From contig OZ241826.1 of NCBI GenBank assembly GCA_965202585.1, forward strand, positions 77,748,001 through 77,812,000: a DNA stretch of 64,000 nt. Reading direction: 5' to 3'. A program made the translations under genes and the position numbers. The first letter of the stretch is position 1. Each line of letters starts with the position of its first letter. Of this stretch, positions 7,006 through 41,605 are shown one piece after another. The notes beneath the pieces are model-generated. The model saw only the letters and a list, made by a program, of their open reading frames with translations. It had not been told where the DNA came from and did not search any database. The stretch comes from Thalia democratica (taxonomy: Eukaryota).

Positions 7006-9560
7006 TTAATAATTTTTTTCATCTTTCGCTTGATTCTTTTCAAGTTCTTTTAGCTAAAAGTTAAAATTATTTATTTTTATATAAAAGCTAAACTTTTTAG
7101 TTCTAGCATTGAAAACTTATTTTTTATAAACTGAAAAGTATAAGAGTATAAGTACTCTTTGCTTAAAAATGTAAATTTAAAACAAAATAAAAGTTTACCT
7201 TGTTTTCGTACTTATCAGATAATTTTCGGAATACTTCAACAAAGTCTTCATATTTCATTGCCATCTAAAAGAACAAACAGATAATGAAAAGTTGTTATAG
7301 TTATGAATTATTAAAAAAAAAATTTTTTTTATATATTTCGAATTTAAATAGATTAATTTTATGGATTGTGGATTAATTAAAGTACATATGGTTTGTTTAC
7401 TAATATAAACATACATTAGGATATGAAATGTTTATAGTAGTTTTAACCTTTTTTTGTATAAGTTTTTATGTAAATAATTAATAAACAACAATTTAATGTT
7501 GTTTTAGCTCATAACATTACTTCAATTGTAAACAACTAACAAAATGTCTTTGTTCAACGTTTTTCTGTCTTCTTATTTCACTAACATAGGTAACCTAATA
7601 TTTTCAAAACTGTTGAACTGTAGTCTTGGACTGAATTAAGTTATTTTTAAGCGTTTATTTGTCATTATTATAGTTTTATTTTTAACAATTTGAACTTAAA
7701 AAAAACTTAAGATCTAATTTTCCATGAGAAAAGAAAAAATTGTTAAAAAAATAAACCTGTTCCAACTCGCTTTCGAGAATCCTTATTCTTTCTTCTTTCG
7801 ACTGGACCAAATCTTGAAGTCGCAGGTATAGAATCGCGTACTCACGTCGAATATCTTCTGATTCCTGATATTTTTTTTTTTTCGAAGTTGAAAACTTTAG
7901 AGTTATATGAAATAATAGTAAGTTTTTTTTTTGTTATTTTATACATAAATACCCTAAGGAAGTAACAAAAAGGTTTAAATTTCGTACTAAAGTAGGTTTT
8001 TAGTAAAATTTGATATATTTTTTTAAATAGCTATTTTTTGATACATATCAATATAATACCTAATTAAATTATAGTTTTTTTTAAAATAGATAAATTATAT
8101 AAAACATATTATGCTTGTTTACAACTACTAAACTTTTTTCAAAATCTTAAAATATAAAAAAACTTTGTTTGTTATCTGTTATTTTTTTAATTTGTTTTTT
8201 AAGTTAAACTGAAAACTAACAGTGTCATTTAATTTAAAATTTAAACATTATTATACAACAATCTAAGCTTACTTTACTAATAAAAGCACAAACTACTTTT
8301 TTTTTATCTGCTATAGACTAAGTTTGCTTATAATAGAAGTTAGTATTGAAGTAGTTTTTCTCGTTTACTAATTAAATTTAAGGCCGCTTATCATTTTATG
8401 AACAGTTATTTTTTAATAAGCTAGACTTCATTTATATGAATAAAGCTAGGTTACTCGCACATGAACTTTTATATTGAACAAATATCTTTATTAAGCAGTT
8501 CAAGCACTAACTAAGGTTTTAAGACGCTTTTCTTCCTCGATATACCTTTTATTTGTTAAATCATCTCTCTTTATTCTGGAGTTAATTTCTTCAGTTTGCA
8601 TTGCTACATCCTATTTGTCAAGTAAAAGTTTTACTGAGTTGAAATAAACGTTCTTTAAGAGCAAAATTAAAGTAAACTTAGAACATCAATTACACGCTTT
8701 TTACGCTTGATTATTAATAAAATATTTCTTTTTTATAAAGGTTATTAAAGTGTTTAGAGTTTTAATCAACCTGGTACTATTTCTATTAGGTTATAAAAAA
8801 AGTCTGTTATTTTTTACGTGATTTAAGAAATTCAAAACAAAGTAAATTTTGTAAAAGACAAACTCAATCAAAATAAAACTTACTTGAAATTTCAAAATTG
8901 TGGTTTGAGTTGCAACGTATTTCTCTGGTGGTGTTTTTAATTCTGTTTGAGAACTGACATTAGCGATTCTATCTTCAGTTGGTACGCGTAGGTAAATGGA
9001 TTTCTGTAAAGTAATTTAATGATTTCATTTTTATTATTGTTTTTATTTGAAAACACTCAATAATAGTTTTTTTTTTGACTTAAACATATTAAGATTTTAC
9101 TTTTAAATTTTGTATGAACAAAAGCAAACTTTCTGGTGGTACAGTATTGTCATCGCTAGAAGGGTCACTGCAAAAAACATGAAAAGAACGGTAATCAGTG
9201 CCGTCAAATAGTTTTCGGTAGGCTTATTAGCTTTACAAATAGAGTGCCCATCTAACTCGAAGGACGCATCATACATAATAGGTTTTATGTAAGGTGCGTA
9301 AGGCCTTATAACGTAAAAGTGTGAAGAGTTATCAGACGAGTATTTGATGACATTATAGTTGTTTTTTAAAAGTTTATCCTCGCATCGCATTAGATACTTT
9401 TGAAGTGTGCCTTTTCTGAAAACTTCCTCATCTGCTAGTTTACCGTTGTTTTTTTGACAAGAATTTTTGTCTTCTTTAAGGTTTTGGGTTTTTTCATCAA
9501 CAATAAAATACTTGTTTTTGTCATCATCAAAAAACTCTTGACATGTAGTTGGAAATGAGG
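7006..9560 (-). CDS. Single-pass membrane receptor, copy A: degenerate CTLD-like ectodomain, TM, cytoplasmic QT motifs and coiled coil (5' exon not located)
   Basis: GT-AG exons complement(9130-9560, 8884-9003, 8512-8610, 7757-7864, 7541-7594, 7199-7264, 7006-7053) join in frame: ..SFPTTCQEFF..KYFIV..SCQKNNGKLA..ICK..YLTALITVLFMFFAVTLLAMTILYHQK|KSIYLRV..VSSQTE..VATQTT..FQ|DVAMQTE..|ESEDIRREY..ELEQ|VTYVSEIRRQKNVEQRHF|MAMKYEDF..|LKELEKNQAKDEKNY*. Copy B has the same exon structure and phases. Confidence 0.85.
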
Positions 9561-10369
9561 CTATAAAAAGTTAAGTTAATTAGAAGTAAAAAATTAATTT
9601 GCAGAAGTTATATCTTGATATTTACGAGTTAGGTTTAAAAATACTAAAGCATACACTTAGATATGTAAAAACACTTGTTTGTTTGTTTGTAGCTAACTTG
9701 TTTATTGGTTTTAACACTTTTACTTAAACATTAAGTATAGATTTTGTTTCTATGTGATTATCCTTATAGTTTATAAAAGTATAATTGAGCTAAAGTAACA
9801 AAACTTCCTACAAATTAAATTAAACAAAACATATCAAGTAATAATTATATATGTACCTGATAAAAATAAATGTTTTCTTTAATTATTTATTAAAGTAAAT
9901 TAAAAAAATTATTTAATATAGATAGTTTAAACATACTTACTTATCGACTATTCTGTAATAGTTTATATTGAAAAGTTTAATATTAGTAAATTAGTCATAA
10001 AGTGTTTTTACATTATTCTTTTTTAAGTTCTGACATTTATTAACACTCCACTAATATCAGTTTATTTTAATTTATAAAAAAACTTTAGCAATGATAATCC
10101 AGCTTAAATATATTTAAAAAAACCTGAAGGCCTGCACTTTCCTGTAAGTGTAAGGAAAAAGTACCAAAAGTTTTTTCTAAATATAAACATCTGAAAAATA
10201 AATAGCTAAAATAAAATTATTGTAGCAGGCACATCGAAAACAACAGCTTGTATACTTTAGGATGCCTTGACGCAGTAACGTTACATTATACATACATTAT
10301 AGTTCCACATTAAAAAAGACCATTAACCAGCTTTTATTGTTTCTAGATTGAAAAATATACAAGTTTAAA

Positions 10370-11074
10370 ATGAAATTACAAATGGAAAAAAATTGCCCAA
10401 TTAGTATTACCACAAACAGTGGCACTTACACATTCTACGATAAAAGAGTAGAAAAATGCGAAGCAGAACAGATATGTCAGAGCAAAGGGCAGATACTAGC
10501 TCCTATTACAAACATGGAGGACCGCAAAGCCATTGAAAAGCTAGCTAGTCAAAAGTGTGGAATTTTTCTTGACCATTATGCGTCATCTTATCATGTTGGA
10601 CTAGAAATTAAAAAGTGTGGAAACAAAGTCACTAAAATATTTTCGAATGGGGTTGCATACAACAAAACTTTGCATGACAGGTTTTACCACTTTAATTCGG
10701 CAAAAGGGTACGAGCACTGTCTTACTGCATTGTGGGTGCCAAACGGTGGAGTTAAAGCACCTATTCCTGTAATTGGTAAATTCAATAAATGTAAAGATTA
10801 TCATGAAAGATTTATTTGTTTGGATCCAGCAAAACCTGACAATAACTCAACTGTCACTGAAGAAGCTCGTCATCTTAAAAGGTCTAAAAGAAGTGTAAAG
10901 TTTAGCAGGGAAAATGATTTGTTAGGCCAACAAAACTTTTATTTTGTGTCTCAAATGTTTGGTGTTTGTTTTTTAGCTATAGTTTGTTGTTTTTTGCTTT
11001 TAGCAAATAGAAAGCTTAAAAAAAGAAACAACTTTTTGGAAATGAAAACTAAATTAGATACAAACGGATGTTAA
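10370..11074 (+). CDS. C-type-lectin-like membrane protein, copy A (CTLD, RSKR site, C-terminal TM, basic tail), 234 aa
   Basis: CTLD hallmarks: EAEQICQSKGQILAPI, YHVGL (WIGL-equivalent), RFIC. Eight Cys are shared with copy B; sequons NKT and NST; KRSKR precedes TM MFGVCFLAIVCCFLLLA, then NRKLKKR. An acceptor (TTTCTAG, 10346) and an in-frame stop precede the ATG. Confidence 0.85.
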   Translation: MKLQMEKNCPISITTNSGTYTFYDKRVEKCEAEQICQSKGQILAPITNMEDRKAIEKLASQKCGIFLDHYASSYHVGLEIKKCGNKVTKIFSNGVAYNKTLHDRFYHFNSAKGYEHCLTALWVPNGGVKAPIPVIGKFNKCKDYHERFICLDPAKPDNNSTVTEEARHLKRSKRSVKFSRENDLLGQQNFYFVSQMFGVCFLAIVCCFLLLANRKLKKRNNFLEMKTKLDTNGC

Positions 11075-12049: not shown

Positions 12050-12405
12050 GGACAAGTAGTTTTAATCGACAGTGACAGTGTGCTTATTTTTGTGTAGAGC
12101 ATCAGCGTGTAGGTTTAGAAACTCTGTGAAAAACGTATAACATTTTAAAGCAAACACATTAATAAACCAACAAGACAAGCTTGTATACTGTTTTTAAATA
12201 ATTTCACACTATTGAGAACCCAATTGTCAATAGCTTTTCGGTCTTTCATGTTATTATCAATAGAAGTTATTATTTGCCTTATGCTCTGAATTATATGCTC
12301 TGCTTGACATTTTTTTGGTCTTTGCTCGTAAAAAGTAAAAGTACCACTTTTTGTGTCACTTAATTTTATTCGTAGACTTAATTCTATTTTCAAGAAACAG
12401 TTCAT
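12050..12405 (-). pseudogene. Inverted, decayed paralog of the CTLD membrane gene (copy A)
   Basis: SGTFTFYEQRPKKCQAEHIIQSIRQIITSIDNNMKDRKAID aligns with SGTYTFYDKRVEKCEAEQICQSKGQILAPITNMEDRKAIE. A key Cys is lost and a stop follows after 86 codons. Confidence 0.8.
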
Positions 12406-27888: not shown

Positions 27889-29694
27889 ATGAAGAGCAAA
27901 CCCCACTGCAACCAGCTCTTCCTGACCGGCCTGCAGTGGCCCAACATGTCGGGGCTGCAAATGTGGGTGAAGTTCATCGACCGCATCATCGAGGCGACCC
28001 ACCTCGACAACCAGGTCACCATATACGGGCCCAAGGGCGTCGAAGAGGTGGTCAGGAGGAGGCTGGAGCCCATGTTCTCAAAGACTCGAAAGGACAAGAT
28101 CTGGCCGCACGTGCTGTTCGTGGAAGTGGCGGACGGGCAAAAGGTGAAAAGCTCCCAAGTGACCGTGACCGCTCACGAGCTTTTAAAGGATGAAAACTTC
28201 ATGTACGAGGTCAACTGCGAGCTTCAAAAGGGCGGAGAAACGCGTAGAGCGAACATGTTTATTGCTGAAATGTCAGATACAAACCAAATGGAATCGATCA
28301 AAGACAAGTTGTCTGATATACCATGCAACCCAGATGACTCAAATTTTTTTGTGCAACAAGCTAACACAGGCGGAATTTATAATTTTTCTAATCAGCTACC
28401 CAACTGGCATGTTCTAACTCCCAATGACACCAACAAAGAAGGGAAAGTTGACGGTTGGGCTGTAAAGAACCTGATCAGGAGCGCATGCAACAAAATTTCC
28501 CCTGGTTTTTTCCCGCTGCATGGCAGAAATAATGTTTTAGACCAAAACCTGCTTGTTGATAATAATAATTTTTTTCAGCTCAGCGATTTTACGAACTACC
28601 TAGTAACCGGCACTTACGGTTTGGGCACAAACAACATTCATTCGGCCGAAAAATACACCAAAGTTTACAGAGACTTGAAAGAAAAGGTGGAGGCGGAAGG
28701 TGTGAGCGCGGATCGCACAAAAAGCAACTGCGACTTTCCAAAACTGACCGTGCTGGGGTGCGGGGACGGGAACGACAACTTCAGGAGTTGCAGCGCCTAC
28801 CTGTTGAAAACAACCGAGAACAGGTCCATGCTGATCGACTGCGGGCCGGGCACGCTTGAGGGCATGCTCAACCACTACGGGCGGGAAAGGTTCCACAAAG
28901 TTCTGAGCACGATCAAAGTCGTTTACATAACGCACAAGCACGCGGACCACGTGGGCGGGCTGGGCTCTCTGATCCACCACGTGTTGAAAACGAACGAGCG
29001 CGCGGAGGAGAAAATACTTTTGATCGGTCCGCCGTGGCTGCACACGCTCGTCCCCACCCAGGTGCCCACGGAGGAGTTCAGCAAAAAGTTCAGGCTGCTC
29101 AGCTTCGGCTTCCAACCGACCCACAACTGCCACAAGCTCGAAGCCGCCCTGGACGTCAGGAGCTTCAGGTGCGTGCTGGTGGAGCACGGGTGCCTGACCA
29201 AGGGCCTCGTCCTCGAAACCAACCGCGGCAACTTCAAGTTCGCCTTCTCCTCGGACACCCTCCCCATGAGCGGCCAGCTGATAAAGCACGGCATGGACGC
29301 CGACCTCCTCGTCCACGAGTGCACGTTCCTGGACCCGATGGCGGCCAAGTTCAAGATGCACTCGGACATGCAGGGCGCCGTGGACACCGCCAACAGGATG
29401 CGCGCCAAGAGCCTCATGCTCAACCACCTCAGCAGCCAGTTCCCCATGTACCCGCTGGTGGACAGGGACATTGATTTGCGCGGTTACCGGGGCAACGTGG
29501 TGGTCGCCATGGACAACTTGGAGGTGGGGCTGGGCGAGGTGGGCCGGTTGGCTCTGCTGCGCCCCCGCATGGAGAAAGTGTTCGGGGCCAGCATCGAGAA
29601 GTTTTACAGGAGGGCGGAGAAGAAGGAGTGGGTGAAGAAGTCGAAGAGCAAGAAGTTGAGCGACACTTTCAAGTTTGTCACCGGGACAGAGTGA
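27889..29694 (+). CDS. Long-form RNase Z (ELAC2/Trz1-like) metallo-beta-lactamase-fold nuclease, atypical, probably lacking 5' exon(s); 601 aa uninterrupted
   Basis: C-domain motifs: LIDCGPGT (I), THKHADH (II, HxHxDH), VEHG (III), SSDT (IV), HECT (HEAT), HSD (HST), NHLSSQFP (V). N-domain pseudo-motif LFLTGLQWPNMSGL..VTIYGP. An acceptor-like TTCAAG at 27885 opens in frame (GTA ATG). No symbol given because orthology versus a divergent paralog is unresolved. Confidence 0.9.
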   Translation: MKSKPHCNQLFLTGLQWPNMSGLQMWVKFIDRIIEATHLDNQVTIYGPKGVEEVVRRRLEPMFSKTRKDKIWPHVLFVEVADGQKVKSSQVTVTAHELLKDENFMYEVNCELQKGGETRRANMFIAEMSDTNQMESIKDKLSDIPCNPDDSNFFVQQANTGGIYNFSNQLPNWHVLTPNDTNKEGKVDGWAVKNLIRSACNKISPGFFPLHGRNNVLDQNLLVDNNNFFQLSDFTNYLVTGTYGLGTNNIHSAEKYTKVYRDLKEKVEAEGVSADRTKSNCDFPKLTVLGCGDGNDNFRSCSAYLLKTTENRSMLIDCGPGTLEGMLNHYGRERFHKVLSTIKVVYITHKHADHVGGLGSLIHHVLKTNERAEEKILLIGPPWLHTLVPTQVPTEEFSKKFRLLSFGFQPTHNCHKLEAALDVRSFRCVLVEHGCLTKGLVLETNRGNFKFAFSSDTLPMSGQLIKHGMDADLLVHECTFLDPMAAKFKMHSDMQGAVDTANRMRAKSLMLNHLSSQFPMYPLVDRDIDLRGYRGNVVVAMDNLEVGLGEVGRLALLRPRMEKVFGASIEKFYRRAEKKEWVKKSKSKKLSDTFKFVTGTE

Positions 29695-32600
29695 GTTTGT
29701 TTTCAATCTAATAAAACACTAGAGTTTATTTTTATAGTAGTAAAATTTATTTTAATTTTTTTAACTTATGAATATTTATTTTTCTAAAATTTTAGTAATA
29801 AAATAGTAAAGAGTTTTTGCAAAATTAAAAAAGTTTTTTTTATTAAATTATTCTATAGTTTATAAATTTTTACCTTGTCCATTTTAAACTTTATCTTGAA
29901 TGATATTTATGAAGATTTTTTATGATAATAGTTTTTTATTAAACTAAATGTTTTTAGATTTTAAAGGTTTACTGCAGTTTAGGTAATTTAGGAAATTCAA
30001 TATAGTTTTTTACAAGTCACAATATTTTCTTTAATCTTAAATATGTTTTAATATTTTTGTAAGTTTGAGTTGTAAAACTAAATACAAGGATTTTTTAAAT
30101 AGATTTATAAACTTAGGTAAACTTTTGCAACAACTCTTAGTAATTTGTAAGTTGTATAAAGTAACTTTACTTAAATTACTTTTAATTCTTTTCAAAAAAG
30201 TTGAAGATTGTGACTTTAACAAGAAATTATGTGCTAGTTTTGAAAAGTTTAAATTTTTTTTTATTTGTTAAATTTTATCACTGCTTTTTTTAGGTTTTTC
30301 AATCTAAAATATAATATTTGTTCGGTTTAGTGACTGTTTTTTTGCACTGCATTTTTTTTCTTTTATAAAAAAAAAAAAGAAATTTTTGTAGCATTTACCA
30401 TGTAAAACACGTTTCAAAAAAGTTATCATAATTTCTATCTAAGGATATAAAGTATTTTTGTGAATTTAAAATACTTGTTTTATCTATATTGGGTAATTTT
30501 TTTAAATTTAATTAAGTTATATGAAGTATTCAAATAGGAAGTTTTTTAAACTTAAATATTAAATAACCAACAATTCGTTGATATAAAAATATTGTTAAAA
30601 CAATATAATGTCGTTATTGTACATTTTAAAATATTTTTAATTTGCATCAATTCTCGTTGCAAATCAGACAAGTTTTATCCATTTTTCTGTAATTTTTATG
30701 AGCTGCATACCTTTTTTAATGTTATTATTCAAGTGTAAAAATTTTAAATTCCCTTTTTCATTGATTGAAAAACTAGGTGTATTTTTAATGTCAGCCTAGT
30801 CTTGTCACATAACATATTTGAGATAAAACCATATATTTATATATTTTTACAAAGAAAAAATTAAAATTATATTTTTTAAAACTGTTCTAAATTTAAAGAA
30901 AATTGTAGAAATAATCTTTGTATATTTTTAAATTTAAAACATATAAAAAAACTTTTAATACAACAGTTTTTAATTTTTAATGCAACATTTTTGAACAGCT
31001 ACTTTCAATTTATTAATTTTTTAAAATCAATAAACTTATGTGCTTTAAAAAAATATAATACTAAATTGAAGCTTTTAAAAGAACTTAATATGAGTATTTA
31101 AGAGTTTGTACAGTTTTAAAAACAGGGTTGCTAAAAACCTGGAATTTGACAAATAAGGCAAAAGTAAGTGAAAAATTTGAAACTTTGAACAAAAATCACT
31201 AATAAACTTGGAATTTAATACAATTTTAACATACTTTACTAGAAATTACTAAAAACTTATCAAATACAATTTTTCTGTTTTGTTAATTATTTTGTTTTAT
31301 AAAACACACTTAGAGTAGCATTACAGTATCTTTTATATATTTTATTCCTATTTAACACATTTTTTACCTTTAATTTGTTAAATACTTAAAAAGGATAAAA
31401 AACTTGTACTGTTAAAATCCTAGAACCTTGTAAAATATCATTTCCACAACAGTTTTTAACAAATTAAAAATGTTGGATGAAACTTGCAAATGTTTTTGAT
31501 TGAAGTAACAATAGTTTCTTTTAATCAAAGTTAATTTCCTTTTTTAGAAATTAAAAAAAAAAACAAGTTTTATTTTTAAACAGTAAATATTAATTTAAAC
31601 ACTACCAAGATGTTTTAAGGGCAGTTTAAGAACATAAATACAAGGAAGTTTTAAATAAACAGCTTCATATAAACATTTAACAGGTTTAACAACTTAGTTT
31701 AGAAAGGAAATGTCGTAAAGTAACAACGTAATATATTTAGTAAGGTAGAAAATAGTTATGTTAAATTATTAGTTTTATTTAAACTTAATTTTATAATCAG
31801 TACTTAGTGTATAAAAACCGTATTAACCTAATATTTTGGTCTAAACCTTGGGGACTTACTCGATATGTAGCAACTCTGCATGGGCTTAAAATGCATTGAA
31901 CTAGAAATAAGAGTTTTTAAGTTTTCACTGAATCAGTATGAATTATAAAATAAAGTAGAAAACAGCTTTAGTTTTTATCAATGAATTTTTACAAACTAAA
32001 GATAAAAATAACTATCTAAGCAAAAGTTATCAGAATTCATATTCCACCATAAATCAGTTTTTAGCAATTTTAGAAAAATGTCAGTTTGAATGCTTGAAAG
32101 TTTATGAACTATTAAAAGAAACTAAATTATTAAATACAAAAAAGTTGTAGTTAAATGCTGTAAAAATAAATAGCCAACTTGTAATTTATAGCATTTTATT
32201 ATTTTAACTATTTCGAAGTAGTCTTTTATCGCTAATTAATTAAGCGATCCAATACTTACAAGGTAATCAGAAAACTTAAAACAAAGATTACTTCTCTGTT
32301 GCATATTTAAATAAGAAGCTTTAGTTTGTACAAATGCTATACGTACTCTTTACTCTAAAAAATACTTGTGACACCTATGTAATGTCGAAAAACATTGATT
32401 TAATTTTCATAATCTAATTAGTGTTATAAACAATACCTTTAACAAGTTTTAAGTCACTTGAAACATGTATGAAGTATTAAAATGTTATAATGATATTTAT
32501 TATAATTATAATATGATTTTAGATAAGCTCTTAGCAGTGTGTGTCAGTTATCATTTTATATATAACATAGAATAAAATTGGTTTAAAAAAGACATAGAAA

Positions 32601-37486: not shown

Positions 37487-40154
37487 CTATGAATTGTATT
37501 CATCCTCCGCTAGTCTCATATCGAGTTCTTTTAACTATAAATTTTAAGTAGTAATTTATTTTACTGAAACTGAACTTTTTAGTACTAGCATTAAAATGTA
37601 CCTGTATTGTTTTCCTATATGTATATATATACATATATATAATAATAAAATAAACTATGAATACTTTTTGTTTAAGTATATAGATAAAACTAGTTGCAAA
37701 AGACAAAAAGTTCACCTTGTTTTGGTATTCAAGCGTAGTGCGTTCATACTTTTTCGAAAGATCGCTGAATACAGTTACGAAATTTTTGTACTTCATGTAC
37801 AACTGAAATACAAAATAAGATAAGCGAAAATTGTTATTTTAAATCTAAAAAAATTTTGATTTAGTATTTGTTATGTACATTTCGAAGTTGAACTTTTGTC
37901 TAAATGAATTTCAATTAAAGGGGGATTTTCAACTTTAATGGTAACTTTTTAATTCATACATACTTTAGAATTATTTAAAAGTTAAAACTAAGTTTAGTTT
38001 GAATAAATAAGAAAGGTTACAGCAATGAATAGTTTGTTGTTCTTTAAATTCTTATTTAAGAGCTTTAATTTTAAGGCACTAACTAAATGTCTTTGTTCAA
38101 CGTTTTTCTGTCTCCTTATTTCACTAACATAAGTGACCTAAAATTTTTAAAACTGTTAAAAATGTAGTCTTTGACCGAATTACGTTTTTTGTAAGATGTG
38201 TTTTTAACTAACTTTTGTTATAATTTTATCTTTAAAAGTTAAATCTTTAAAGCATAATTGGCTTAAGAAGCAAAATTAGTTTATTTAAAACTTCAACAAA
38301 CATGTTCCAGTTCGCCTTCAAGTAACTTGATTTTTTCGTCACGATAAAAAAGTGTTTCTTGCATTTGTAAATATTTGAGAGCATACTCTCTTCTCATTTC
38401 GTCCTGTGTCTATTAAATAGCTAAAATAAATCTTAAGTTTGAAACATTAAAAGTTTTGTGAAATATTTTGTAAGTTTATAACACTTTCCGCTAGGTTAAG
38501 ACTGTTTATTATTAGAGTAAGCTATTAGCGCTTTAAATTACTTACTAAAGTTAATACTATTGTTTTTATTTCAAAGTGTTTTAAACAAACTTTTCACAAT
38601 CAGCTTTCAAATTAACTAACTTATTGTTTTTCTTAAATCTACTAGAAAAGTAAATAAAACAAAATATGATTGTATATAACAACATAACTTATTCTAAACT
38701 TTTATATTATAAGAATTTTGTTAGCGAACCTTTTTTTTTTGTTACGCGTTTCAACAAATCAAAAACTTATATTCCGTTATACATCTATTTTACCTTTCTT
38801 TTAATGAAAAATTTTGATAATGGCGTAAATTACTACCTACTTCCTAGTTTTAAATTACATTTTGCTTATAGTAAATGAAAATCAAAAAAGCTAATATGCT
38901 AATCAAGTTCAAGACAATTTATTACTTTGTTGAACATTGTTTGTTTATTAAGTTAAGTTTCTCATATACAACTAGATTACATGCGCTTGAATAAATTTGA
39001 TATCAAACAAATATTTGTTATAAGCGAAAATAACAAAGATTGTATAAATTTTAAACGCTAACTAAGTTTTTAAGACGTTTTTCTTCTTCTAGGTATTTTT
39101 GTCTTGTTAGTTCAACTTGCTTCTTATGTTTCAAAATATTTTCATCAGTTTGTATTTCTGCATCCTGTTTGTCGAGTAAACATTTTATGAGTAAAAATAA
39201 AAACTTTTCAAGAGCAAAACCAAGTTAATTTAGAGAAAAAAATTTAAGCCTTTCACGCTAAAGAATTTATGAATTATAATTTCTTGTTTAAAAGGGTATT
39301 TTTAATATTCAAAACTTTGGAAATTTTAGTTTTGATTTTAACATTGTTTTTTTTTCAATGGTATAATATGTCTTTTTTATTCGTACCTTATTTAACAATT
39401 ATAGTACAATGTAGGCTCATAAATTTCTAAAACACTAAAATCAATCAAAAAAAAACCTACTTGAAACTTCAAAATAGTTGTTTGAGTTGAAACAAATTTT
39501 TCAGGAGGTAATTGTATCTCTGTCTGGCATGAACTGCTACCAATTTTGTCATCAGTTGGTATACGTTGGTAAAAATGTTTCTAAAAATGTAAAAATTATT
39601 TCATACTTATTATTTTTTTTTGGGCACACATTTATTAATTACCTTTTTCTGTAAACATTTTTTTTTAGTTAAAGCAAACACATAAAACTTTGTATATGAA
39701 TTTTAAATATTTTTAACGCAAACCTTTTGGTAGTACAGCAATGATATCGTTAGAAAAGTGACGGTTACAAATGACGCTATAACAATCACAAGAGCAGTTA
39801 AATAGTTGTTTGGTTCGTCAACCGACTTACATATAGCAAATCCTACCTTCTTGTAAAAAGGGTCGTACTTTTTGGGTTTGAATGAGTGAGTCAATAAAGG
39901 GTTGACAATAAAAATTGATGAATAATTATACGATGAATATCTAATTAAGTTATATTTGCTCTCTTTAAACTTGTCTGTGCATCGTGTTAAATATTTTTGA
40001 AGTGTGCCTCTTCTAAAAATTTCTTCATTAGCCAGAATACTTTTTTCGCTCTTACAAGACTTTATGTCTTCATGGAGCAACCCAGTCTTTACTTTAGCTA
40101 TAAAGTACCTATTTTGACCGTCGTAAAACTTGTCACAATTTTCAGGTAGTGGCG
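37487..40154 (-). CDS. Single-pass membrane receptor, copy B (homolog of 7006-9560)
   Basis: Exons complement(39724-40154, 39461-39580, 39063-39164, 38302-38409, 38084-38137, 37716-37802, 37487-37534): ..PLPENCDKFY..RYFIA..SCKSEKSILA..ICK..TM..YYQK|KHFYQRI..SSCQTE..VSTQTT..|DAEIQTD..|TQDEMRREY..ELEH|VTYVSEIRRQKNVEQRHL|LYMKYKNF..|LKELDMRLAEDEYNS*. The 431, 120, 108, 54 and 48 nt exons match copy A in length. Confidence 0.85.
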
Positions 40155-40900
40155 CTGTATAAGTATTTCAAAGTTAAAAATAGTATAAGTAAGTTATTTC
40201 ATTATCTAAAGACAGCAACCTCAAATAGTTATAGTTTTTTTTTTTAAGTTTACAAAAAACTATAAGCTTAAATAAAAATTACTACGTTTTACTTCACCTA
40301 TAATTAAACTGTAATTAGATTCAATAACATGTACTTTAAATACTTTTAACATACATGTTGCTTAATAAGTAATGTTTGTTAAAAAATAACTTAATTGTTG
40401 TATACTTTCTAAAAAAATTTGCTTTTACTTTAGTTTTTATATCTCAGTCATTGTTATAGTTGAAATAGTCAACAGTTTTTTTATTTTTAGTAAGTAACTT
40501 TTAGTTTTTCAAATGTTCTTTAAAGACATTGTTAAGTACAGTAAACTTTTAGATAGTAGACCAACTTTAAAAACAAGCTTACACTTTTTGAAAGATGTAA
40601 TATCTTTTTATAACTATTATATATTTTATAAATATAACACAAGCTAAAAAACCTGATAGTCCGTTTTCTCCCGTAATTGTCAGCAAAAAAATCCAAAATT
40701 TAAGTTTAAATATAATCATCTGAAACAGATAAGAAAATTAATTATTTAAATCAAATATGGTATTCATTAAATATTATTTTGTTTTACAACGTTCTCCATA
40801 AAACTATTTTTTAGCCAACATAAATGTTAAAACCTTTTTTTTAAACCCGCAAATAATCTGCTTTTATTGTTTATAGATTTTAATAACATAAAAGCTTTAA

Positions 40901-41605
40901 ATGGTTTTAAAACTAGAAAAAAATTGCCCTACAAGTATTACTACTAGTACAGGTACTTTTAATTTCTACGAGGAAAAAGCACTAAAATGCGAAGCAGAGC
41001 AAATATGTCAGAGAAAAGGGCAGATACTAGCTCCTATTACGAACATGGAAGACCGCAAAGCTATTGAAAAGATAGGTGGTCAGGAATGCGGAATTTTTCG
41101 AGAGAGTATACAAGGTTATCATGTTGGTTTAGAAATTAAGGCGTGCGGAAATAAGTTTACCAAAGTGTTTTCAAACGGAGTCAAATACAATAAAACTTTA
41201 CACGACAAACTGTACTATTTTTACCCAATAAAAAAGTTTGACTGCCTCACTGCGTTGTACCCACCAGGTTACGGAGCCGATGAACAAATTGTGGTAGTTT
41301 CGAAGTCTAATAATTGTAAAGGTTACGTTAGGAGGTTTATTTGTTTGGATCCGGCAAAACCAGACAATAACTCAACTGTCACTAAAGAAGCTCTTCATCT
41401 TAAAAGGTCTAAAAGAAGTGAAAATTTTAGCGAGGATAGTGTTTTATCAGGCCGACAAAACATGTATTTTATGTCTGAAGTTTTCGGCTTTTGCTTTTTA
41501 GCAACTGCATGTTGTTTTCTGTTTGTAGCAAATAGAAAGCTCAAAAAAAGAGTCAATTTTCTGGAAATGAAAACTGAACCATTTACCAACGAATGTAAAC
41601 ATTGA
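40901..41605 (+). CDS. C-type-lectin-like membrane protein, copy B, 234 aa
   Basis: About 66% identical to 10370-11074 by manual alignment; same Cys, RSKR and TM; in-frame TAA immediately before the ATG. Confidence 0.85.
   Translation: MVLKLEKNCPTSITTSTGTFNFYEEKALKCEAEQICQRKGQILAPITNMEDRKAIEKIGGQECGIFRESIQGYHVGLEIKACGNKFTKVFSNGVKYNKTLHDKLYYFYPIKKFDCLTALYPPGYGADEQIVVVSKSNNCKGYVRRFICLDPAKPDNNSTVTKEALHLKRSKRSENFSEDSVLSGRQNMYFMSEVFGFCFLATACCFLFVANRKLKKRVNFLEMKTEPFTNECKH

Follow-up and report, generated by a model that had tools for sequence, protein, structure and literature searches.

Spliced genes for lectin-fold receptors with a predicted LC8 docking site in the cytoplasmic tail in the salp Thalia democratica

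Our analysis of a 64-kb window of the Thalia democratica genome (the whole stretch of DNA that was analysed, 64,000 nucleotides; GenBank assembly GCA_965202585.1, contig OZ241826.1, positions 77,748,001 to 77,812,000 of the forward strand) revealed two paralogous genes, copies A and B, that belong to a real, lineage-private family of receptors with a C-type-lectin-like domain (CTLD) fold. Both lie on the minus strand, and spliced RNA supports copy A. Exon assembly gave eight exons for each copy, namely a signal peptide exon, an exon for a four-Cys ectodomain and a transmembrane (TM) helix, and six tail exons (t1 to t6), with products of 330 aa (A) and 336 aa (B) and a tail of 164 aa (A) or 170 aa (B) after the TM exon (Table 1). 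Within this tail a central TQT site is a credible predicted docking site for the dynein light chain LC8 (DYNLL), with two weak QT sites flanking it. We propose that A and B are CTLD-fold receptors in which the TQT site docks LC8 and the dimer would be held by a clamp on the tails, a reading which we regard as evenly balanced.

The existence of the tail is supported by gene structure and by RNA. The first-pass annotation, made from the sequence alone, had placed a hidden six-exon tail of about 165 aa behind an open reading frame (ORF) that ends just after the TM helix, and our exon assembly agrees with it down to the coordinates: the exons are bounded by AG acceptors and GT donors, the introns are GT-AG in 14 of 14 cases over both copies, and the six tail exons of copy A are all in phase 0. 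Frames of 330 and 336 codons are intact in this AT-rich window (about 25% GC), while random frames in the same DNA end within about 11 codons. RNA evidence, which covers copy A, comes from a marine metatranscriptome (X1), the sole RNA library holding the stretch, with a 5% share of sampled words. With an identity to the window of about 95%, the X1 contigs come from a close relative of the sequenced strain, not from that strain itself. One contig (record 5) joins 10124 to 9560 and extends to 9130, linking the signal exon to the ectodomain/TM exon, and another (record 4) crosses from the 9130 region into t1. Record 3 contains the junctions 8884|8610 and 8512|7864 and reaches the opening bases of t4 beyond 7757; record 2 has the junction 7757|7594, and record 1 lies on t5 (7194-7264). 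The intron borders in these contigs are exactly those predicted for copy A. The signal-ectodomain and TM-t1 borders and t1 through t4 are thus joined in RNA, t5 is covered by a separate contig, and the transcripts continue into the tail instead of stopping after the TM exon. The contig across the TM/t1 junction (9000-9007 / 9130-9133) reads ...CCAG|AAATCC... and seems to lack an AAA (Lys) codon predicted by the GT-AG model, probably owing to a 3-nt strain difference.

The AlphaFold2 model of the head of A, built on 17 family sequences, reached a pLDDT score (local distance difference test, as predicted) of 88.7 and has a helix at residues 117-142. In VIA-align comparisons the head matched NKR-P1A (Z 9.5, root-mean-square deviation 2.7, 89 residues) and BDCA2, snake-venom CTLDs and LOX-1 (Z 8-9); overall, 89-101 residues were aligned and the top rows were all CTLDs. 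Foldseek likewise returned mostly CTLDs, with weak E-values (0.001-0.1), and identity to the structural matches was 8-16% in the structural alignments. Up to an E-value of 10, Pfam yielded no match to the heads of A and B, not even Lectin_C, and because this signature is absent we call the head lectin-fold and not lectin. The "lectin-like" ectodomain of the first-pass annotation is therefore borne out at the level of the fold, without a sequence signature. Exon 2 of copy A carries invariant Cys residues and a conserved N-x-S/T sequon, the latter common to all seven own-genome paralogues aligned. Since the sequon is kept in the head, the N-terminus resembles a signal peptide and Lys/Arg residues stand just after the TM helix, the natural reading is that A and B are type I single-pass proteins with a cytoplasmic tail.

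LC8 anchors consist of a Gln at position 0 with mid-sized branched or hydrogen-bonding residues (T, V or I) at -1 and +1. In both copies the Gln of a QT dipeptide stands at tail positions 19, 33 and 45, with site 1 14 residues upstream of site 2 and site 3 12 residues downstream of it. The motifs quoted in the first-pass annotation were all recovered by six-frame search and in the spliced models, in A as NVSSQTE, YVATQTT, DVAMQTE and SIYLRV and in B as SSSCQTE, FVSTQTT, DAEIQTD and HFYQRI. Given the local Q/T content, the chance of at least three QT in the first 60 tail residues is P ~0.016 for A and ~0.048 for B, the two copies not being independent. Site 2 (KYVATQTT in A, KFVSTQTT in B) has the exact TQT anchor in both copies, together with Lys at -5 and Val at -3, while sites 1 and 3 are marginal as anchors. 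Flank preferences described for LC8 are a polar residue at -4, a large one at -3, no bulky aromatic at -2 and D, E or P at +2 (PMC6607443). The flanks of site 3 (D-V-A-M-Q-T-E in A, D-A-E-I-Q-T-D in B) fit these published rules, with Asp at -4, Val at -3 (A) and Glu/Asp at +2; the Gln at -5 of this site is the final codon of t1 (8884-8886). Weak LC8 sites beside coiled coils or in multivalent arrays are described to bind by avidity (PMC6607443). Among the changes listed for related RNA and DNA runs none fell on motif codons. Other readings of the QT dipeptides were rejected by eye: the residue before Q is not kept between A and B as expected of an S/T-Q kinase cluster, and spacing or residues do not fit TRAF2/TRAF6 sites, PPxY or KFERQ-like motifs.

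A canonical LC8 is encoded in the genome at C1:56.14 Mb in two exons. We modelled a complex of two full-length LC8 chains (P0026, 94% identical to the genome's LC8 over exon 2) with two copies of t1, which scored 0.75, the best control reaching 0.41. Three model runs shared at least 91% of contacts, and partner pLDDT was at least 49 (about 50), which is compatible with disorder. In the model, t1 residues 25-36 (PPEKYVATQTTI) touch three segments of LC8 (residues 59-70, 34-40 and 80-89), with residues 35-36 of LC8 in contact with the motif Gln. These contacts correspond to what we take to be the canonical mode of LC8-client complexes from solved structures. Site 2 is thus placed by the model in the canonical LC8 groove, above controls, and the tail segment PPEKYVATQTTILKFQDVAMQTEE is the stretch that we propose would bind LC8 in a QT-dependent manner. 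The genome also holds an intronless gene of the DNAL4 (axonemal)-type dynein light chain family with 107 aa (C2:35640034-35640357; locus L018 1435-1758).

The part of the tail behind the QT sites is presumed to be helical. The charged stretch of t2 is read as helical from its composition, and the last 91 aa of A (t3-t6) contain no Pro or Gly and consist to 51% of charged residues or Gln (E, D, K, R, Q). Hydrophobic residues fill 7 of the 8 a/d positions in two 28-aa windows that correspond in position between A and B, and a short coiled coil after the QT sites is plausible. Exon t4 is the most conserved piece of the protein, with 17 of 18 aa and 51 of 54 nt identical between A and B. Conservation extends beyond the exon: t4 and 56 nt of the upstream intron are 86-88% identical in DNA among three copies A, B and C (the latter described below), and the block at window positions 7520-7701 / 38063-38251 is 79% identical over 189 nt (94% in the exon), well above the rest of the gene. 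High DNA conservation around an exon is often seen with regulated cassette exons; skipping of t4 (54 nt) would preserve the frame, and no skipped form was seen. That t4 derives from a repeat or from an exonised mobile element was rejected, since the genome has no match to it outside the three gene copies. Closer to the membrane, the Tyr-x-x-hydrophobic signal (YxxPhi), whose Tyr stands about 5 residues past the membrane, is kept in A (SIYLRV) and B (HFYQRI), as had been claimed. Its reading as an immunoreceptor tyrosine-based inhibitory motif (ITIM; pattern [S/I/V/L]-x-Y-x-x-[I/V/L]) fits A only, since position -2 is His both in B (HFYQRI) and in C (HFYQRV), which share YxxPhi alone with A.

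Copies A and B are 59% identical in the tail and 43% in the head, and the ratio of nonsynonymous to synonymous substitution rates (dN/dS) of the tail is about 0.21, with synonymous sites near saturation. As judged from these alignments, the tail is under purifying selection. The best conserved 15-aa windows of the whole protein are t4 (15/15) and then the TQT block EK[YF]V[AS]TQTTILKFQD (13/15), with neighbouring tail windows dropping to 3-7/15. Across the 802-Mb genome the head exon matches at ten loci, and a profile of the head finds no others: three in tandem on C1 (A, B and C), one on C2, three on C6, one on C7, one at C1:38 Mb and one broken on a small contig. Two further family members carry stop codons. 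Copy C (C1:77713200-77717500, locus L011) lies about 31 kb before the start of the window, and its head is about 90% identical to that of B. It has STQKT in place of STQTT at the central site and a net 5-nt indel in t3 that causes a frameshift, and it is probably a young pseudogene in decay, if the differences are not assembly errors. The YxxPhi signal of A, B and C also occurs in the C7 clade (KDYQAV / KDYQSV). Two C6 paralogues keep EEIQTDG and AETQTDG. A family-wide TQT rule was rejected, the D/E clade and a Tara relative of the C7 paralogue being without the motif; the LC8-type motif is a trait of the A/B clade, perhaps also of the C6 clade, and not of the whole family. In the distant paralogues at two C6 loci (L014, C6:57.85 Mb; L016, C6:60.92 Mb) and the C7 locus (L015, C7:28.92 Mb) the predicted first tail exons are 52-59 codons long, open in AT-rich DNA, and carry EEIQTDG, AETQTDG or TETQTV. 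In the C6 pair at least, the next exon is helix-like with ...ETLQH.

The family appears to be private to its lineage. A search of 1.84 billion representative proteins with the head profile returned only ten short exon-level marine metagenome fragments from ENA/Tara, none of them annotated, and a scan of JGI metagenomes with the head exon gave no relative. The tail was compared with the libraries exon by exon. On this basis, Pfam and NCBIfam gave chance-level rows only, t1 and t2 had no match among PDB sequences and t3 only keratin (E 6.2), and the t1 reading frame gave no candidate among 5.8 billion proteins, a weak negative given a query of 40 aa and a filter on length. The libraries and literature searched, with the tail compared exon by exon, held no described receptor of this architecture. 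The statement of the first-pass annotation that the architecture is unrecognised is supported, in that no described family matches the ectodomain profile or single tail exons.

Several observations weigh against an LC8-bound tail, or against individual parts of it. At -4, site 2 carries an aromatic residue, Tyr in A and Phe in B, and in a study of the motif no LC8 binder had a hydrophobic residue larger than Ala there (PMC6607443); the Thr of site 2 at +2 is neutral by published rules. Of the three LC8-type motifs claimed at the outset, the central one stood as a true TQT anchor, while sites 1 and 3 have non-standard, weak anchors (SQT/CQT and MQT/IQT) and are not engaged in the complex model. 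The claimed coiled coil fared similarly: the Pro/Gly-free composition and the a/d positions speak for it, and its periodicity is not significant against shuffled sequences, the heptad score being matched by 52 of 500 shuffles for A and 130 of 500 for B (10-26%). The complex model could reflect memory of solved LC8-TQT complexes. Its score of 0.75 is a mark attained by 51 of the 78 solved complexes and, among 108 mismatched pairs, by 2, in a calibration that excludes peptides and disordered chains, and one unrelated 43-residue control scored 0.41. RNA support comes from one library only, of a related strain. Within the family, copy C has TQK at site 2, the D/E clade has SVQAVE/GVQAVT at the QT positions, and the C7 paralogue has TETQTV where its Tara relative has IETKTV. 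The TQK of the frameshifted copy C is mildly consistent with a motif that matters only in intact genes.

We propose the following mechanism. The head would be a glycosylated C-type-lectin-like domain outside the cell, followed by the membrane and, five residues after it, the Tyr-x-x-hydrophobic signal. The first ~50 tail residues are low-complexity and taken as disordered, and within them the TQT site may adopt a beta-strand and occupy the LC8 dimer groove. Site 3 would lead straight into a stretch of about 110 residues that is free of Pro and Gly, of which t3-t6 supply 91, and which we read as helical. One LC8 dimer, or up to three with avidity, could clamp two tails in parallel register, and such a clamp would stabilise an otherwise marginal coiled coil and make or regulate the receptor dimer. 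LC8 binding and LC8-driven dimerisation are predictions, resting on motif and model, whose chances we consider roughly equal in either direction.

A and B could also be real CTLD receptors whose tails make no use of LC8, the QT dipeptides being shared as A and B are fairly recent duplicates and the tail acting through the YxxPhi/ITIM-like signal, the helix and t4 binding to an unknown adaptor. We consider this possible, though doubtful. It would account for t4 and not a QT site being the most conserved element (15/15), for YxxPhi being kept in A, B, C and the C7 clade, for the aromatic residue at -4 of site 2 that breaks the LC8 rule, for the absence or loss of the motif in other clades and a relative, and for a QT enrichment of only P 0.02-0.05 per copy. 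It is harder to reconcile with the TQT block, which stands out at 13/15 against its neighbours, and with a complex model of canonical geometry well above controls. Moreover, at sites 1 and 3 the Q and the T at +1 are kept while position -1 varies (S/C, M/I), a pattern expected of LC8 anchors and not of S/T-Q kinase sites.

The same motif and model evidence might be read in terms of a link to dynein, with LC8 making the receptor a microtubule cargo after ligand binding and not building a dimer. LC8 sites do occur in membrane proteins, one case being the Kir4.1 channel, which is reported to copurify with LC8 (PMC11999606). This is nevertheless highly improbable in our view, as one client fills both grooves of the LC8 dimer with two copies of itself, so that LC8 counts as a dimerisation hub and not as a cargo adaptor (PMC6607443; PMC12057147), and the sequence holds no pointer to dynein itself. 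That the tail exons are non-functional remnants, or A and B transcribed but decaying pseudogenes, is scarcely conceivable: the net 5-nt indel in t3 of copy C and the stop codons in two further family members speak for it, and against it A and B have intact 330/336-codon frames, 14 of 14 GT-AG introns and a dN/dS of about 0.2, and spliced RNA exists.

Compared with known systems, the LC8-docking tail that we propose most closely resembles those of multivalent LC8 clients such as Swallow, myosin Va, Nup159, ASCIZ/ATMIN, Chica and KANK1, which also have xQT sites in a presumed disordered segment beside a helical or heptad region. In A and B these would be one strong and two weak xQT sites, 12-14 residues apart and followed by a heptad-like region, with a predicted beta-strand in the LC8 groove. 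Those clients are soluble proteins of the cytoplasm or nucleus, whereas A and B have the tail of a single-pass receptor, no sequence homology to them, an aromatic residue at -4 and LC8 binding that is predicted. Of the more than 100 clients known for LC8, nearly all are soluble; the p54 protein of African swine fever virus is a membrane protein that is reported to bind LC8. In Kir4.1 (PMC11999606) and p54, as we propose for A and B, the LC8 site belongs to a cytoplasmic part of a protein embedded in the membrane. Both Kir4.1 and p54 differ from A and B in topology and fold, with no CTLD head, no adjoining coiled coil and no homology. On the ectodomain side, A and B share the compact CTLD fold with NK-type receptors (NKR-P1, CD94/NKG2, LOX-1, CLEC-2), and the best structural matches of the head are NKR-P1A/B, BDCA2, snake-venom CTLDs and LOX-1; the A/B head is without calcium/sugar signature. 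NK-type receptors are type II proteins that have an extracellular neck and short tails of the ITIM or charged-TM kind, whereas A and B would be type I with a tail of 165 aa that is unlike any tail of NK-type or type I CTLD proteins (layilin, CD302).

Table 1. Coordinates of copies A and B and their exons and motifs in the window.
Feature	Position	Strand	Content	Evidence
Copy A, gene	7006-10190	minus	eight exons	exon assembly
Copy A, exon 1	10124..10190	minus	start codon and signal peptide, 22 codons + 1 base	ORF, GT donor, RNA contig record 5
Copy A, exon 2 (431 nt)	9130..9560	minus	4-Cys C-type-lectin-like ectodomain ~9220-9552; TM helix ~9133-9210	AlphaFold2, alignment, RNA record 5
Copy A, t1 (40 aa)	8884..9003	minus	SIYLRV 8983-9000; site 1 NVSSQTE 8941-8961; site 2 KYVATQTT 8899-8922	RNA records 3, 4
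Copy A, t2 (33 aa)	8512..8610	minus	site 3 DVAMQTE 8590-8610, then charged stretch	RNA record 3
Copy A, t3 (36 aa)	7757..7864	minus	heptad-like helix, end ...ILESELEQ	RNA record 3
Copy A, t4 (18 aa)	7541..7594	minus	VTYVSEIRRQKNVEQRHF	RNA records 2, 3
Copy A, t5 (22 aa)	7199..7264	minus	second heptad-like stretch	RNA record 1
Copy A, t6 (15 aa + stop)	7006..7053	minus	stop ends at 7006	gene model, low X1 depth in bin 7014-7127
Copy B, gene	37487-40719	minus	eight exons	exon assembly
Copy B, exons	40719-40653, 40154-39724, 39580-39461, 39164-39063, 38403-38302, 38137-38084, 37802-37716, 37534-37487	minus		
Copy B, QT sites	39518-39538, 39476-39499, 39144-39164	minus		

Other features of the window lie outside the two genes. 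An unrelated ORF of 234 aa on the plus strand (10370-11074) is arranged head to head with copy A; it matches the Pfam families Xlink and Lectin_C weakly (E 0.02-0.03) and has a TM helix at its C-terminus, and a fragment of a similar ORF is found at 12145-12405 on the minus strand. A 145-nt block at 10324-10467 has a counterpart of 75% identity upstream of copy B, at 40854-40998, and the gene pair may therefore have duplicated together. A 2-kb island at 28001-30000 has 48% GC, the rest of the window having 21-29%.

For gene annotation, the A/B pair illustrates that an ORF-level reading misses the C-terminal half of these proteins, and that gene models ending just after the TM helix in this AT-rich genome can hide long multi-exon tails. 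For LC8 biology, a surface receptor joining a TQT site to a coiled coil would, if true, extend the idea of LC8 as a dimerisation engine to receptor assembly. The A/B tail with LC8 would then be a simple testable system of one peptide and one small protein. It might further be imagined that salp-private lectin-fold receptors use LC8 as a built-in subunit, with a juxtamembrane LC8 ladder and a marginal coiled coil setting the dimer or cluster state and fast-diverging tandem heads serving recognition; they would then be the first single-pass recognition receptors with an oligomeric state controlled from inside the cell by LC8, a wider scenario that we consider unlikely. For tunicate biology, A and B represent an unannotated, lineage-private family of lectin-fold receptors with ten loci, three of them in tandem around the window.

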